A DNA stretch of 64,000 nucleotides from Octopus sinensis. Its lineage: Eukaryota. Location: positions 36,952,001 through 37,016,000 of the forward strand of contig NC_043002.1 of NCBI RefSeq assembly GCF_006345805.1, given 5' to 3'. Each line of letters starts with the position of its first letter. The first letter of the stretch is position 1. A program made the position numbers and the translations under genes. A model generated the notes under the pieces. It ran no database searches. It worked only from the letters and a program-made list of their open reading frames with translations, and was not told the origin of the DNA. Of this stretch, positions 1-55,969 are shown in pieces.

Positions 1-900
1 TATCAAGATTTCCTGTTTTGGTAATGTAAAGAAGTTATTCCCTCCCTAATTCTAATTTGCTCCCTAGTTTTGGCATTTCCTTTGAATCTGTTCCCTATAG
101 AAATTGGTTTTTGCACTTGTTCACTTTGTACTAATTTACCATCTTGTATCTGTTCTCCAAGCTTAATTAATAAATCCTTCCTCTTCTAATGAGTCTTTCG
201 CTAATAATTAAATCATTTTCTTAAAAAACTAAACAATGATTTCTGTTATCTTTTCCTCTCAGAAAGTGAACATCTCATTTTATTACTTGCGCTAAAGTAA
301 ACATTAGGCCATAGCAACACAAAAAGAAATGTGTCTGCATGCACACACACACACACACATACACTCACACACACATATGCTCACACACACATACGCTCTC
401 TCACACATACACACGCACACGCATGCGCACATACCACACACACACATGCATACACACCAATGTGCACACAAACAGACGGACAGAAATGCTTGGGATATCT
501 TTTTTTATTGATGTTCTTCCATATCTTAAGATTATGGTAAAGCAGTTTCTGCAGTTCACTTTTATCAATCTACATGTTAGTACACTACATAAATTCTTAA
601 CATTATCTGATTAAGAGTAAAAAAAAAAAAACCCACTAAAGAAATATCAGCTTAGAATTAAACCAGAAGATACCTGAAAAAAAAACAAGATAAAATAAAC
701 ACAAATTAAAATCAATGTTTTGAAAGTTTTTTTTTTTCTTTTTCTGCTTAAAGCTATTTTTGATATGGATCCAGATTTCCAAAACTCATTCCTCATTCGT
801 TTTTACACACTAGTTGAATTATTCTGGAAATCTGCATGAGTTGTTGGAGAAGATCTATGGCTGAATTATCATTATTTTTGTTTTTCCATATTTCAGTCAA

Positions 901-1640: not shown

Positions 1641-3564
1641 GATAATATTGATGAGAAGCAGAATTGATCTTGGTGAATTATCGAACTCATGATACTGGAA
1701 GCCAGAACAAATGCCATAAGGTATTTTTACCAATGCTCAAATCCTTCTGCCAACACCTCGCCCAATGTTGTTCCTAAAGCACAATAGTCAGCATGTGATG
1801 AGTTCAAACTTTGTATGAAATGTTTTGAGACTGAGGTATTCAAGAATGGTTGCATAGTTGATATAGTGAACTTTATTACTTATTTTTTTATATATGATAT
1901 TGTAAGTTTATTATATATTGTAACATATATTTACTTACATATGTTAGGAAAAAAAGGAATGATTGAAGATGAGGAGTCTGCAAGCAGCAGTACAGGCAGC
2001 TTGCTGTAGGAAATCAGTAACTGTGAAAAATAACCTATAAGGGTTGAGGGGACAATTTAATCCTATCTTATAAGGGTTGAGGGGACAATTTAATCTTATC
2101 CTTATAGTCTTCCTAGTGCTGGCTGCATGATAATATCTGCCCAGGCACTCTGTAAAGTGGTTGTTGATAGGAAGGGTATCCAGTCATAGAAACTATGCTT
2201 AAAAGCATCATGAACAACAATAGAGATTAGTGTTATTTTTCTCTAATGCAGTGTTTCTCCAATGACAAAACATTGTAATCGGAGACTAGATGCCATGTGA
2301 TCATCCAACTAATTGTTTCTCATAGGGCAGCAGAGAGAGCTGTATGGGGCTGTAATGGGGTGACCAAATTGCAGTGTCTGTTCAAAACCGTGGCAAAGGA
2401 AGATGAATTATACGGAAGCAAAGAGTATTTTATCTTCTTGTTAACTAAGAGAAAAGAGGCAAAGAATTTTGTGAAGTGGGTAAGCTGGTATTTGTCAGCT
2501 GAAGAATCATTAATCTGATCCATGATGCCAGCATGGAAAACAAAGATTTAGAATGATGATAACACATATATAAGACAGGCTTCTGAAGTTTCTGTGCACC
2601 TAATTTCACTCACTGGGGCATTGATCAAACCCAGTCTGTGGTACTTGCCCAAAGTGTTTCCATGTGGGATTGGATGTACAAACCACATGATTGCAAATCA
2701 AACTTCTCCACTACACGACCATGCTTCATTAATAATAAATCCTTTAAAAATCTGAATCTTTGTTGGTCTATTGAAAGTTTTGTTTCCATGCAGTAATATA
2801 TGAAAGGCAATTTTTTTTATTTGTCTCTAACCCTCTTCCAACACACTCATACACATTTTAGTGTAAGGCAACCTTTTTCACTATGTGTTTTCATATGATA
2901 AGATAATTGCGCAGGAAATTGTGTAAACAAACATTTCCCAAACACAGTATCTCAGAAGCTAATATGCCAGATTACTGAGTAGTTATATTACTAGAAATAG
3001 CCTTTCTTTCGGTTGTCTGTACAAATTCAGGTTATTGGTATTTTTTACTTGTATCAGCCTTTGGAGAAAATAAATAAACAAACAAACAAATGAAGAAATA
3101 AATAAAGAAAGAAAAATAAGAAACAACTCTCTTTTAGATGTAAATAATTTCCTTCAAAGTTTTCTCATGTAAGCACTGAAAATTTGCACATCTTTCCAAC
3201 CCATAATAGTATATATAAACAAACAAAAGAAATTAAAGAACTACAGCATCAGAAAAGATGGTCTTTACATTCAAATTATTATTATTATTTTTTTTTTCCT
3301 TTCAGTTTTCATTTGCAGACATTCAACAGGATAACGAGGCCAGTTTTATTCAAATGTTAGTACAGGTATGATGAAATGGTTAATTTTGGTTTAAACTAAT
3401 CAAGCACTAAATAGACAACAACTGTAACAACACTAACAATAACAACAACAACATTAAAAAAATGGAGAATACTGAAAGGTAGAGGAAAAAAAACAAAAAA
3501 AAATCCCAAAATCCAAAGCATGCAAAACTGCTACCCCAATGAAAGCAAACAAAGGAATGGTTAC

Positions 3565-3883
3565 CTGAAAGGTTGTTATAAATGCCCAGAGAAGGGAATC
3601 AAAGTTAGCTCTTTTGCAGTGACAACTAAGATTGCTGGTAGCAGGTTTCCAATTTTGTAGTGATGGGAATGTAGTAGTGGTAGTAGTAGTAGTAGTACTA
3701 GTAGAATTAGTAGTAGAATTAAAAATGTTGGTGACAGTTGTGGTAATATTGTTGTTGTTGTTATTGGTGGTGAAGATTGGAATAGCAGTGGTACTAGTAG
3801 TGGTGTTGATGGTGTAAATGGGTTCATCGTTCTGCTGATGACCTTCACAGAATTTGCCGCCGAAAAAACACATGCCTAAAACA
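3565..3883 (-). CDS. Cav3: Cav3 domain II S5-turret-P-helix alternative exon, long form (exon 12b equivalent) with a Thr/Asn-rich expanded turret
   Basis: (S)VLGMCFFGGKFCEGHQQNDE...TTTTTTTTTFPSLQNWKPATSNLSCHCKRANFDSLLWAFITTFQ. GGKFC start and CxC-x-R-A-N-F end are 12b hallmarks. Acceptor ccccacctgcatgtag, donor CAG|gtaacc; 319 nt, same phases (2/0) as 12a, no stop codons. Confidence 0.93.
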
Positions 3884-9720: not shown

Positions 9721-10602
9721 TACTTCTCTTCTTACTATCATAAAGAATCCACCTCCAGTTTTCACTAGTTGTCTTCATAGGTCAAATCCACTCTAATCAA
9801 CATTATCTATACTCTTTAAAAATTTCATGCAACTGAGCTTATAGGAATTATCTCCCCTGTTTGTTGCTTCTATATACTAAGCATTTTTAGAAGAAATTTT
9901 TGTTTACAAATTGCTTTGATAACCTCAATTTACTAAAGTTTTTTTGACTGTCTATATTACTTCATATGTGAGACCCTATTATATTAGTAATTAATAAGCA
10001 GAACACTCCCCTGGGGTATTTTTCTTTAACCATATTTATGAGGCAAAAACTTCAGTACTAAAACAACAAATATACAAGTGAAAAGTGAACAGAGCAGTCA
10101 AATACATATTACCTCCAAGCATTATGAATGAAAACTAAAAGAGTAATTAGTCGATGAATTAATTTTTTTCTTGAAGAACATTACTGTTCTATCTACGTCA
10201 CCTTACTACTTCAGACTGCTCATAGTTTCTATGTAATTATAACAATCACTTCTTATGAAGAAACCGTAATTATAGAGGCCAATTACTAATGAGTAAAATG
10301 TAATTATTATGGTTACCAATAAAGCTGCTTACTTTCCTCAAAGTCAAGAAAAAATAGTTACACAAGTAATTCTGATGGTTAAAAAAGGAAAAATACAAAT
10401 ATTAAGAAATGTTGAGAAAGATATCTTAGAATGGTTATTTCTGAAAATATATGGATAGCATAATATATACAGATATAGATATGTATCTATGTATAAATAA
10501 ATGCATACACACACACACATATGTATATATATATATATATATACATATATATACTTGCATATCATAATAGCCACATAATTCTATTAACCCATATATTACA
10601 TT

Positions 10603-10650
<48 letters not shown>

Positions 10651-11119
10651 TCACCATTACTATCGTTTTTCTATCCATTTTTCCTTTCTTGCATGGGTCA
10701 AACAAAATTTTGATGATTTTCTTCCTAAGTTATGAACATTATTTTCCTGCCTATATTCTTCTAACTACTTTTACTCTTTATTCCTCTATTTTACTCCTTT
10801 ATTCTTCTGTTTTATTCCTTATAAACTGTGAATTTTATTCCTTATAAACTAAATTTCCCTCTGTCTAAAACATTCATACCTTGTCTCTGATGATGGAATA
10901 CCCAGTGCATGGACACATGCTAACTTACCACTTGGATTATCCCAGAAACAGCTGTAAGACTCCAAATTGAATTATTCTAAATGACTTGTGATACTCGTTC
11001 TGCCTTGGTTTTGATTTTTCCTCTAATATAATATAATATAACATAACATAATATAATATACATATATATATATATATATATATAATATATATATATATAC
11101 ACACACACATATGTATATA

Positions 11120-11411
<292 letters not shown>

Positions 11412-11415
11412 CCTG

Positions 11416-14005
11416 CATAGCCTGCCACGACTCTCGACAAGAAAGGCAGGGTGCTGCGAAGGTGCCATCACGGCGGCGGAAGTGCGGGAAGCGATGGCAG
11501 AATGCTCGAGGGACAAATCACCGGGTTTGGATGGTCTACCCTACGAATTTTACTATTGTATGCCAGACTTGTTTGGAGACGTCTTGGCAGCGGTATACTG
11601 CAACTGGCAGCAAAACGGGAGCATACCCGGTTTTGTGAGTCGAGGAGCTGTAACTCTGCTGAAGAAAGATCCAAACAAGGGAAACATTATAGATAACTTT
11701 AGGCCAATCACTCTGCTCAATGCAGACCTGAAAATTTTGACAAAGGTGTTAGCCAAGAGGTTGGCGCTTGTCATGGAGAAACTGGTTGACAACGCACAAA
11801 CGTGCGCCGTGCCGGGCCAGAGCATCCATGACAACCTCCATCTGATGCGCTACATCATAGACAGGGTAGTTAACGAACCTGGCATGGGTGGGGCCCTGAT
11901 CAACTTGGATCAATCGAAAGCCTTTGATAGGGTAGACCATCGATACTTGGAGGCAGTCCTGAGAGCGGCTGGTTTCGGTCCCGTCTTCCGCGGCTGGATA
12001 GCTGCCTTGTACAGAGGCATCCGTTTGGTAATTCGCGTAAATGGACATCTATCGAGACCCTTCGACATTGCACGTTCGGTCCGTCAGGGATGCCCCCTCT
12101 CGGCGCTTCTATACGTATTGACTCTTGAGCCACTACTGCGGAAGCTGGCGACTCTGAGGGGCATCCCGCGAGAATTAGGATGCGGGACGAGCGTGTCTGC
12201 ATACGCGGACGACGTCACCGTCATAGTGTCAAGCCACGAGCACATCGAGCGGGTCGGCGAGACACTGAAAGACTACGAAGCGGTGACAGGAGCAAAAATC
12301 AACCGGGAAAAGTCAGTGGGCTTGCGGCTCGGCACCTGAGAAGCAAGCCCATGCCGTCCACCAGTACCTCCGTCGTGGGACGCTGGACAGACGGCCCGGT
12401 TGAGTTGCTCGGGGTCTGGTTCGGTCCGGACCTCCAAATGGAGAAGAACTGGAACGAGATAACGAGTAGGGTGGTCACTCTCGCCCAGCAATGGGCCGAG
12501 AGGAAACTGTCCCTAAAAGGTCGGGCGGAGGTGGTGAACGCGTACATCGCGTCCATCATCTACTACCGCCTGACCGTCGTACCTTGTCCCGACCCTACCA
12601 TCACCAAACTAGAACGCATCCTCTTCCGCTTCTTGTGGAAAGGATGCGTCCCGATGGTCAGGCGATCCATTTGCTGTCAACACCCGTTAAAAGGAGGGCT
12701 GGGCATGCCGTGGTTGATGATGCGCAGACACGCGCTGAGACTGCGACATCTCTGGCTCTATGTAGACGACGGTGAACAGATGTGGTCGCCGTTTGTGAGG
12801 CACGCATTCCCGCAACTCGTCTCCATGACCGAACTACAGTCGTGGATCAAAAAGAGGCCGAAGAAGGGCGAATGGCACCGCGAGTGTCGCGTTGCTCTCA
12901 AGCAACTCTGCCGTCCCGGGTCGACCTTGAGTGACTTCAACACAACCAAAGCATTCTATAGGGGATTAGTGGAGGGGAGGTACGACGACGAGCTCGGGGC
13001 AAACCTGGGTGTCGACGAGGAATACCTGACCCGCCTGTTTCAAACGACTTTCGGCCCGGGACCTATGGACAACTTCCAGAGATCCCTGGCCTGGCGGTGC
13101 TACCGAGAAGCGCTACCCGTTCGGGATAAGCTCTATAGGCATGGCTCGAGAAACACGGGGCCGACCTGCCCGAGATGCGGGCAGAGCGACGAAACCGCTC
13201 TGCACGCAATCGTGCAGTGTCCAGCAATTTCCCACCTGTGGGCTTATGTCGAACGACTGCTGTCACGTGTGGGACGTGTCGGTTTATCAGCCGAGTCTAT
13301 CGTTAATATCGTCACGCCTCCTTCCTTCAAATGGGAAGGAAGAGCTATTTTTATCATACTTGTGGCTATGGCGAAAGAATGTATCTGGTGGACGCGTCTG
13401 AAAGGATTAGAGACAAACACTTTCCTCTCTGGTCAATCTCTCATCAACTTCTTCAAGTATCACTTGAAGAAAAAAGTGAGAGTAGAGAGGCAAGTTTTGT
13501 CTAGTGAATGTTTTAAAAAAGATGGGTGAATGTAGCAAGGATGGCACGTATGAATGACGAAGCCACCTTGACTATGATTCTATGAACCGTAAAAATTAAT
13601 ACAGAGAGTTGCTTATTTGCAAAAAAAAAAAAAAGAAATATAACATGTGACTTCATTGACCGAGGTTACCGTGGTCTTTTCCGTAGGCTTTTCTTTCCAC
13701 GGGTAAACCTCACCTGTCCCCCCCTTTACACTTCATATTGACATTTCTGTGATAACGATCCCTATTGATCAATTTTTTTCCTCTCCCCCTTTTTTTTAAC
13801 CCCCCCCTTTTTTTTTGTCCTCTTTCTCTCCTTTTACGATCCCTTTTGATCGACCCCCCCTTTTTTATTTTATTTTTATTTTATTTTATTTTTTTCTTAT
13901 TTTTTATTTTTTTATTTTTTTATTTTTTTTAAACCTTCAAAAGAAAAGCTCTACCTTGTAATTTGTTCTATCTGTGTGCAGCCCTGTGTGGCTAATAAAG
14001 AAACA
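11416..14005 (+). mobile_element. 5'-truncated non-LTR retrotransposon, L1 clade / Tx1-like ORF2 (RT + C-terminal CCHC finger) with 3'UTR
   Basis: RT motifs KSPGLDGLPYEFY, NFRPITLLNADLKIL, LDQSKAFDRVDH, VRQGCPLS and YADD; C-terminal CPRCGQSDETALHAIVQC. There are two apparent 1-nt deletions, at about 12337 (GTW>GT*) and in the A-run at about 13515-13520. Restoring the second gives FKKRW...MIL* with TGA at 13583-13585. Pyrimidine-rich 3'UTR and AATAAA at 13994-13999. Visibly GC-richer than the flanks. Confidence 0.93.
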
Positions 14006-29199: not shown

Positions 29200-29715
29200 A
29201 TCAAATCAAATCAAAACAAATCAAAATAGATGAACATCAATGGAATTTGTATCTTTGTGGTACCAGTGCCGGTGGCACGTGGCACACAAGAAAACCATCC
29301 GAACGTGGCCGTAGCCAGTACCGCATCGACTGGCCTCCGTGCTGTGGGCACGTAACAAACACCATCCGATCGTGGCCGTTTGCCAGCCTCATCTGGCACC
29401 TGTGTCGGTGGCACATAAAAACACCATCTGAGCGTGGCCGTCTGCCAGCCTCGTCTGGCACCTGTGTCGGTGGCACATAAAAAACACCATCCGAGCGTGG
29501 CCGTTTGCCAACCTCGTCTGGCACCTGTGTCGGTGGCACATAAAATCACCCACTACACTCTCGGAGTGGTTGGCGTTAGGAAGGGCATCCAGCTGTAGAA
29601 ACACTGCCAGATCTGACTGGACTGGTGCAGCTTTCAGGCTCCCCAGACCCCAGTTGAACCGTCCAACCCATGCTAGCATGGAAAGCGGACGTTAAATGAT
29701 GATGATGATGATGAT
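29200..29715 (+). mobile_element. Well-preserved RTE-tail repeat with an internal 62-63-bp tandem array (3 full units)
   Basis: Unit accatccgagcgtggccgtttgccagcctcgtctggcacctgtgtcggtggcacataaaaac starts at 29361, 29423 and 29486. 5' (AAATC)n, 3' (GAT)n tail; CpG-rich. Confidence 0.85.
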
Positions 29716-45262: not shown

Positions 45263-45331
<69 letters not shown>

Positions 45332-55512: not shown

Positions 55513-55596
<84 letters not shown>

Positions 55597-55969
55597 CATG
55601 TATATATATATATACATATATACACACAGATACACACACACATATGTATGTGTGTGTATATATATATATATGTGCATGTATGTATGTATATATGTATGTA
55701 TGCATGTGCATAATTATGTATGCAAGTATGTAGCAGCTAAAATTAAAAGGAAAGAAAAAAGATAAATTAATATTATTTTTATACTTAAATAGAAAAAATC
55801 ATTGGGAAAAACATTAAAAAATTCATTGTCTTTTACAATTTAAAAGAAATCAGGTGTTAATAAACTTTTGACATTGTAACATTAAGCATCCAGTTTCTAC
55901 AGCCTTATGTGAATTTTCCAGAAAAGTTAACTAAAAATTAAAAGAAATTGAACAAAGTAAAACACTTCT

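Follow-up and report, generated by a model that had tools for sequence, protein, structure and literature searches.

The alternative exons 12a and 12b of the Cav3 (T-type) calcium channel are the best-studied case in which an extracellular turret, and not the selectivity filter, sets the preference for Na+ or Ca2+. Guan et al. 2020 (PMC7382465) described exon 12a as encoding 38-46 amino acids (aa) with the pattern CxxC...C, and exon 12b as a penta-cysteine C...CxC...CxC exon, 'always longer (range 48-55 aa)' than 12a; the molluscs of their supplement are all gastropods (Lymnaea, Lottia, Biomphalaria and Aplysia), accompanied by nematodes, arthropods and annelids. In the later work of Guan et al. 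2022 (PMC9694082), a Lys (K1067) in 12a and an Ala or Met in 12b were found in all molluscan and nematode Cav3 genes, with K1067 lying 20 residues before the filter Asp D1087, and swapping K1067 and the equivalent 12b residue in Lymnaea swapped the preference for Na+ and Ca2+. Here we analyse a stretch of 64,000 nucleotides (nt) of Octopus sinensis DNA (NCBI RefSeq assembly GCF_006345805.1, contig NC_043002.1, positions 36,952,001 to 37,016,000 of the forward strand; hereafter the window), in which the exon at 3883-3565 of the minus strand is best read as the true alternative exon 12b of a single Cav3 gene, maintained by selection. Cephalopod terms are absent from PMC7382465, from its supplement and from related papers, and a long, cysteine-poor 12b is apparently undescribed, as far as the searchable literature shows.

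Gene structure and identity of the exon

Exon 11 and the two exons 12 follow one another on the minus strand (Table 1), separated by introns of 32 kb and 24 kb, of which the second, between 12a and 12b, measures 23.8 kb. The AG at the end of exon 11 is completed to a Ser codon by the first base of 12a or of 12b, and the two exons 12 (142 and 319 nt) share the same phase and a length of 1 mod 3. Inclusion of both or of neither would shift the frame, so that a productive messenger RNA (mRNA) should carry just one of them; this combination of phase and length is the one expected of mutually exclusive exons. Exon 13 (QEDWN) was not found downstream of 12b within the 64-kb window.

The acceptor of exon 12b reads ccacctgcatgtAG immediately before a T, with its AG at 3885-3884, and the exon opens TGTTTTAGGCATG; its 3' end reads ACCTTTCAG followed by GTaaccatt, the donor being CAG/GTaacc (the slash marks the boundary; GT at 3564-3563). 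After the base that finishes the Ser codon there are 106 stop-free codons, and the coding frame alone is open, the other two holding 10 and 2 stops. The translation is (S)VLGMCFFGGKFC EGHQQNDEPIYTINTTTSTTAIPIFTTNNNNNNITTTVTNIFNSTTNSTSTTTTTTTTTFPSLQNWKPATSNLS CHCKRANFDSLLWAFITTFQ, laid out as ...FGGKFC, 74 aa, and CHC-KRANFDSLLWAFITTFQ. A sequence-only reading of this DNA had described the exon as a Cav3 12b whose turret was expanded by microsatellites into a mucin-like, heavily glycosylatable loop; the intact frame and the conserved flanks and splice sites that it reported were confirmed on the minus strand, and its 74 residues (3625-3846), with 25 Thr, 13 Asn and 7 Ser, five N-X-S/T sequons and N6 and T9 codon runs, were reproduced exactly. 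A second AG lies 8 nt inside the exon (3876-3877, TGTTTTAG/GC), in the window and in the related locus L001 described below; splicing to it would shift the frame and reach a stop after 10 codons, and it perhaps merely belongs to Val-Leu-Gly codons.

The peptide of exons 11 and 12b matches Pfam Ion_trans (E 7e-18), and its best matches in the PDB are to domain II of the human channels Cav3.2 (E 4e-41), Cav3.3 (5.5e-39) and Cav3.1 (about 2e-36), followed by Cav2.1 (1.2e-24). Across the domain II region of S4-S5, turret and P1 the gene sorts with Cav3 and not with Cav1, Cav2 or Nav, an assignment that rests on exons 11, 12a and 12b, the rest of the protein, including the EEDD filter region, lying outside the window. 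The identity of the exon as 12b, proposed by the sequence-only reading, is upheld because it is the tandem second exon of the IIS5-P1 loop, placed after 12a and in the same phase, because it starts with FGGKFC and replaces the Lys of 12a by a neutral residue before NFDSLLW, and because its best matches among solved structures are to Cav3. The partner exon 12a has the turret pattern CxxC-17-C, and the 17 residues that had been noted there do lie between its second and third Cys.

The closest described exon, 12b of Lymnaea LCav3 (Senatore et al. 2014; PMC7382465; PMC9694082), likewise comes second in a pair of same-phase alternative exons that follow the IIS4-S5 exon. It shares with the octopus exon the start ...LGMxxFGGKFC, with Gly where 12a and the vertebrate channels have Cys, and the end CxC-x-R-A-NFDSLLW...FQ, with Ala in place of the Lys of 12a, and in both exons the first, fourth and fifth of the canonical cysteines (C1 to C5, in order) are present. 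In contrast, the Lymnaea exon encodes 50 aa and that of the window 106 aa, the distance from the first Cys to the terminal CxC is about 18-20 residues in Lymnaea-type 12b and 74 in the window, and the octopus exon has no central CxC and carries an additional Cys at the end of S5. The vertebrate Cav3.1-3.3 channels (PDB 6KZO, 7WLI, 9AYG) have homologous S4-S5 and P1 flanks and the FGxKF motif, but only about 10 loop residues after FGCKFS, a single turret Cys (in a disulfide to voltage sensor I, according to PMC7382465) and no alternative exon.

Length and cysteine framework

To set the exon against others of its kind, canonical 12b sequences were taken from metagenome contigs with invertebrate host DNA and from a representative protein library. 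In 11 independent loci and proteins the spacing C-8/9-C-1-C-7..10-C-1-C-3 was observed, and the canonical 12b exons recovered (annelid-type loci and P0122 included) encode 50-54 aa. With a common measure of the loop, from KF to two residues before NF, the window 12b has 80 residues, canonical 12b has 24-28 and the window 12a has 21, and 140 sequences of the 12a type span 10-36, with a median of 13. The window 12b is thus a clear length outlier, its outer loop being about three times the usual size and the exon about twice the published length (106 aa against 48-55 aa in PMC7382465), as the sequence-only reading had stated.

The penta-cysteine pattern is reduced to C-74-CxC in the window and to C-9-C-38-CxC, in an exon of 80 aa, in L001. 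The central CxC is gone, as had been claimed, with Tyr and Ile in those places; L001 is intermediate, with a TGC (Cys) codon where the window has TAC (Tyr). C1, C4 and C5 remain; C3 is missing from the window and from L001 alike, C2 from the window alone. The Cys at the end of S5 (LGM-C-FF) is the fourth Cys of exon 12b, omitted from the earlier count. In the disulfide models published for Lymnaea 12b (PMC7382465), C1 pairs with C5, C3 with C4, and C2 with a Cys in voltage sensor I; the insert occupies exactly the former C3-C4 sub-loop.

Two observations on other turrets stand beside this. In L011 (JAAUYG010023055.1, ~2900-3070), a 12b-type exon lacks C1 and C5 together (GGKFS ... DCKYE) and keeps the central CxC; this joint loss fits the modelled C1-C5 pairing. 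Among exons of the 12a type, five sequences (P0124, from a Logan contig, P0130, P0131, P0139 and P0140) have loops of 31-36 residues rich in Asn, Ser and Ala, beyond the published 12a range, from which it appears that the domain II turret tolerates low-complexity growth in other invertebrates as well. The P0124 turret resembles the window 12b in its Asn/Ser-rich, repeat-like insert between conserved turret cysteines (loop CKNEDIFVNKPITTLSYDNKSNDNNSNISIIKRC), but this insert lies in a 12a exon, its loop measure is 36 and not 80, and all its cysteines are kept.

The selectivity switch

The Lys/Ala pair that governs ion preference in Lymnaea is present in the window. Exon 12a reads GCKFC ... CSR-K-NFDS, with the Lys of the switch position at 27761-27759, and exon 12b reads GGKFC ... 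CKR-A-NFDS, with the Ala immediately before NFDSLLW, a pattern that fixes the identities of the two exons. The position was matched to Lymnaea by residue arithmetic and not by direct sequence alignment: A1078 equals K1067 plus 11, which is the length difference between the 12b and 12a exons, so both residues occupy the same position counted from the 3' end of the exon. On this evidence, the end of the turret facing the pore would work as it does in Lymnaea. Since the Ala and the entry of the P1 helix are unchanged, the 12b isoform is most likely still the more Ca2+-selective form. The change in Na+/Ca2+ selectivity that had been suggested as a consequence of the expansion is therefore unlikely to be its main effect, given that the switch residue is kept and that selection on the flanks is strongly purifying (see below).

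A related locus and selection on the exon

A search with a masked 12b retrieved one relative, P0121, on a 617-kb contig (L001; ENA ERZ21867824, ctg123201l). Protein searches (exons 11 and 12b, masked 12b, and the 12a open reading frame (ORF)), a HMMER scan of 1.84 billion representatives and a scan of metagenome contigs gave P0121/L001 as the sole ortholog, all other matches being canonical 12b exons of other invertebrates, none of them derived from a transcript. One candidate was discarded: the match in L013 (Ga0126336_10046978, 1436-1477; ORF SLSCHCKRANFESL) is 86% identical to the base of the window 12b, but GGKFC and the Thr tract are missing and the sequence after it is truncated; the match was probably forced by the search pattern.

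The 12b of L001 encodes VLGMCFFGGKFC EPQQNSDSNCHTTTTTTSTTTTSSTTTTTTTTTTQTSLQNRTSVWQPR CHCARANFDSLLWAFITTFQ. Its flanks, VLGMCFFGGKFCE and CHCxRANFDSLLWAFITTFQ, are identical to those of the window exon, with which it also shares a Thr-rich (ACN)n tract, the loss of C3 and the Cys at the end of S5. It differs in keeping the second canonical Cys, at a spacing of 9 after the first, and in lacking the N6 and AIPIF/TVTNIF segments, the window having about 26 extra codons. Its loop has 48 residues, 22 of them Thr, with one sequon. Its 12a-12b intron, of 8.1 kb, is also shorter than the 23.8 kb of the window. A long, Thr-rich loop is thus common to both lineages, which marks it as a trait of the lineage and not one private to the window.

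Alignment between the window and L001 is confined to the exons and some 50 nt to either side of them, the introns beyond being unalignable. An interspersed repeat of about 80 nt, common to the window (55569-55646 and 11051-11113) and L001 (897-977) at 79-86% identity, is the sole alignable sequence outside the exons and suggests that the two genomes are related.

Selection was assessed with Nei-Gojobori counts of synonymous (dS) and nonsynonymous (dN) divergence between the window and L001. For exon 12a, which is 89% identical in protein to that of L001, dS is 0.67 and dN/dS 0.075 (12.5 synonymous and 5.5 nonsynonymous differences; Fisher P 3e-6). For the flanks of 12b (33 codons), dS is ~1.2 and dN/dS 0.027 (11.5 synonymous and 2.5 nonsynonymous; Fisher P 2e-8). 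By these counts, purifying selection on the 12b turret base (FGGKFC ... CHC-x-R-A-NFDSLLWAFITTFQ) is strong. The net length difference between the two 12b exons is 78 nt, in frame, and in both species the coding frame alone is free of stops; with both flanks constrained in one frame, the reading frame of the interior must have been preserved.

Origin of the insert

The microsatellite origin that had been proposed for the insert is borne out by its trinucleotide repeats. Its codons are ACT, ACC and ACA together with their one-step neighbours AAC/AAT, AGT, TCT, ATT/ATC, GCT and CCA; the repeat unit is a single codon and not a repeated peptide. The array that encodes NSTTNSTSTTTTTTTTT ends in a T9 run (3696-3670) of the form (ACT)5 ACC ACT ACT ACA. 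Tandem Repeats Finder (TRF) also reports a 12-nt period over NSTTNSTS, the (AAC) run being too short to be flagged. The window as a whole is dense in microsatellites: over its 64 kb the program returned 60 rows, some of them overlapping descriptions of one array and other triplet arrays included. An AT-rich sequence so rich in microsatellites, the introns of 24 and 32 kb and the molluscan Lys/Ala pattern are together compatible with an octopus as the source.

The Thr tract of L001 consists almost purely of Thr and Ser; that of the window is broken up by Ala, Ile, Pro, Phe, Val and Asn. We read the insert as the product of growth by slippage and decay by point mutation, any selection for a hydrophilic composition rich in Thr being weak at best. 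In the L001 tract, changes at third codon positions exceed those at first and second positions, but an attempt to detect selection from this pattern was set aside, since the variants come in blocks (ACC x3, ACA x3) with too few independent events.

Elsewhere in the introns, a perfect (ACT)14 at 45263-45304 has the same unit as the exonic array, and a GC-rich 63-nt tandem repeat (3.2 copies, 29347-29545) stands out from sequence of otherwise 34% GC. The 12a-12b intron also holds, on the plus strand at 11131-13529, a degenerate non-long-terminal-repeat retrotransposon with two overlapping ORFs (RVT_1, E 8.5e-32; zf-RVT, E 4e-8), whose 5' end is overlapped by a (TATC)75 array at 11110-11411; this element adds to the 23.8 kb of the intron.

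Glycosylation and disorder

By homology, the 12b loop is extracellular. The 74 residues between the first Cys and the CHC include 4 Pro in addition to the Thr, Asn and Ser already given, Thr and Ser making up 43% of the loop, and the excess of Thr (25/74) has a P of ~5e-13 against a background of 6%. The five sequons (NTT, NIT, NST, NST and NLS), to which the sequence-only reading had attached weight, are at chance level: shuffles of the loop that preserve its composition give a mean of 5.25 sequons, with P(>=5) = 0.68, and the sequons were dropped as independent evidence. The description 'mucin-like' applies at the level of composition: the loop is poor in Pro, and its match to Pfam Mucin, which reflects composition only, lies below the threshold (19 bits against a cutoff of 34.7) and was set aside. 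Molluscs have the enzymes of mucin-type O-glycosylation, and the snail ppGalNAcT prefers Thr over Ser and, strongly, sites next to Pro (PMC4245494). The insert probably carries O-glycans on the Thr clusters, and N-glycans at some of the sequons.

In an AlphaFold2 model of exons 11 and 12b the confidence score (pLDDT) is 63-82 in S4-S5 and 41-50 across the insert, where one low-confidence hairpin is predicted, which is weakly consistent with a flexible loop.

Table 1. Positions of the features discussed, in window numbering except where L001 is named.
Feature	Position	Strand	Remarks
Cav3 exon 11	60352-60167	minus	domain II S4, S4-S5 linker and most of S5; AG/GT splice sites
Cav3 exon 12a	27858-27717	minus	142 nt, 47 codons + 1; AG/GT splice sites
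Cav3 exon 12b	3883-3565	minus	319 nt, 106 codons + 1; AG/GT splice sites
Extra Cys at extracellular end of S5 (LGM-C-FF)	3870-3868	minus	also in L001; His in canonical 12b and vertebrate Cav3
Turret interior, 74 residues	3846-3625	minus	between first turret Cys (3849-3847) and CHC (3624-3616)
TAC (Tyr) at position of canonical second turret Cys	3816-3814	minus	TGC (Cys) in L001
N6 run, AAT(AAC)4AAT	3765-3748	minus	within segment absent from L001
(ACT)n-derived array	3716-3670	minus	TRF period 3, 15.3 copies (3671-3716); homologous (ACT)n in L001
Conserved turret base C-H-C-K-R-A	3624-3607	minus	fourth and fifth canonical Cys; Ala at 3609-3607
Intronic (GTT)n-rich arm	3428-3456	minus	complementary to exonic N6 region 3744-3772; part in the feature uncertain
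L001 exon 12a	1701-1842		same order and splice sites as in the window
L001 exon 12b	9991-10231		same order and splice sites as in the window

Evolution of the turret and alternative explanations

The explanation that we consider rather probable is that this is a functional exon 12b whose C3-C4 sub-loop has grown by in-frame slippage, with the turret base and the Ala kept and the insert tolerated and probably glycosylated. C3 would have been lost first, since it is absent in both species, and its loss would have removed the length limit on the disulfide-closed C3-C4 sub-loop; replication slippage in a microsatellite-rich genome could then have lengthened the sub-loop in frame, and the window lineage would later have lost C2 too, by a change from TGC to TAC. 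C1 and C5 probably still staple the base of the turret, from which the insert would project outward as a flexible lasso. Such an insert would be a tolerated appendage, its effects, if any, falling on surface properties, access of blockers or trafficking and not on the selectivity mechanism.

Several points weigh against this account. The order of events rests on the window, L001 and outgroups, that is, on a single comparator species, and the protein collections searched yielded no transcript-derived cephalopod-like Cav3, with either 12a or 12b. The AlphaFold2 model derives from a 17-row alignment of a fragment that lacks the rest of the pore, and is weak evidence for disorder. The disulfide assignments are carried over from the Lymnaea models and would apply to the window protein by analogy. 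C4 persists in the window and in L001 even though C3, with which it is modelled to pair, is gone, so an orphaned C4 would need a new partner or a different pairing scheme; that the Cys at the end of S5 is this replacement partner is speculation. Finally, retention of the Thr tract at a dS of ~1 could mean selection and not tolerance.

An adaptive reading, along the lines of the sequence-only one, takes the insert for a mucin-like canopy that covers the outer pore, is heavily glycosylated and has been favoured by selection, and which would alter selectivity, block by metals or toxins, trafficking or contacts with the matrix. We regard it as unlikely, although the Thr-rich tract persists in two lineages at dS ~0.7-1.2, its Thr residues are encoded by mixed ACT/ACC/ACA codons, the tract of L001 is interrupted by Ser only, the loop is extracellular by homology and the molluscan ppGalNAcT prefers Thr. 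Against it, the two loops differ greatly (74 against 48 aa, and five sequons against one), the number of sequons is that expected from composition, Pro is scarce where the snail enzyme strongly prefers its neighbourhood, Pfam Mucin is below threshold, the window tract is heavily interrupted, as a decaying repeat would be, and the known determinant of selectivity is unchanged.

Somewhat more doubtful is a further reading, in which the domain II turret of the Ca2+-selective Cav3 isoform of cephalopods has been rebuilt, with a glycosylated, Thr-rich stalk replacing the C3-C4 loop. The disulfides would then be rewired, the Cys at the end of S5 pairing with C4, the link of C2 to voltage sensor I would have been lost in the window lineage, and the Asn run might be recoded by adenosine-to-inosine (A-to-I) editing through an exon-intron duplex. 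If true, the outcome would be a T-type isoform that stands apart in its gating-pore coupling, in its response to redox state or metals, or in its interactions outside the cell.

The duplex just mentioned joins the exonic (AAC)n to a (GTT)n in the intron, some 290 nt downstream. The two form an inverted repeat of 29 nt with 83% complementarity, which may be an editing-complementary sequence for ADAR, an element that acts in splicing, or a product of chance. It bears on a third possibility, which we hold to be quite improbable, namely that the tract is removed as an exitron or recoded by A-to-I editing at the RNA level, leaving a shorter or different mature turret. Cephalopods edit the mRNAs of neural channels extensively, (GTT)4 is rare in the window (4 places), and a stem of 17 bp within the 17-29 bp duplex appears in both the minimum free energy and the centroid folds of the pre-mRNA. 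However, the z-score of the fold is only -1.69, its arms are simple repeats, which abound in this genome, and the duplex is absent from L001. As for an internal intron that would excise the insert, inspection by eye (not an exhaustive scan) gave a single plausible GT...AG pair (GAAG/GTCATC ... CTTAG/T), which removes 217 nt, out of frame, and whose donor is absent in L001, and this candidate was rejected.

Least probable of all is a decaying or unused exon 12b under relaxed constraint, with only 12a in use: it has lost two of the five defining Cys, its interior is of low complexity, the protein collections searched yielded no transcript and some species have been reported with 12a only (PMC4436565), but 12a transcripts are equally missing from the databases, which makes the absence of 12b uninformative, and the low dN/dS of both flanks, the conserved splice sites, the retained Ala and the in-frame length difference, with only the coding frame open in both species, effectively exclude a long-dead exon.

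Implications for the Cav3 family

The case is one of microsatellite slippage reshaping the pore loop of an ion channel; it brings no new mechanism or kind of channel, and the physiological effect may be little. In breaking the published rules of length and cysteine content while keeping the selectivity switch, the window 12b amounts to a natural experiment that separates what appears to be essential in the turret (its base and the Ala/Lys position) from what appears to be dispensable (the C2 and C3 bridges and the length of the sub-loop), and it offers ready-made constructs for the role of cysteine bridges, loop bulk and glycans.

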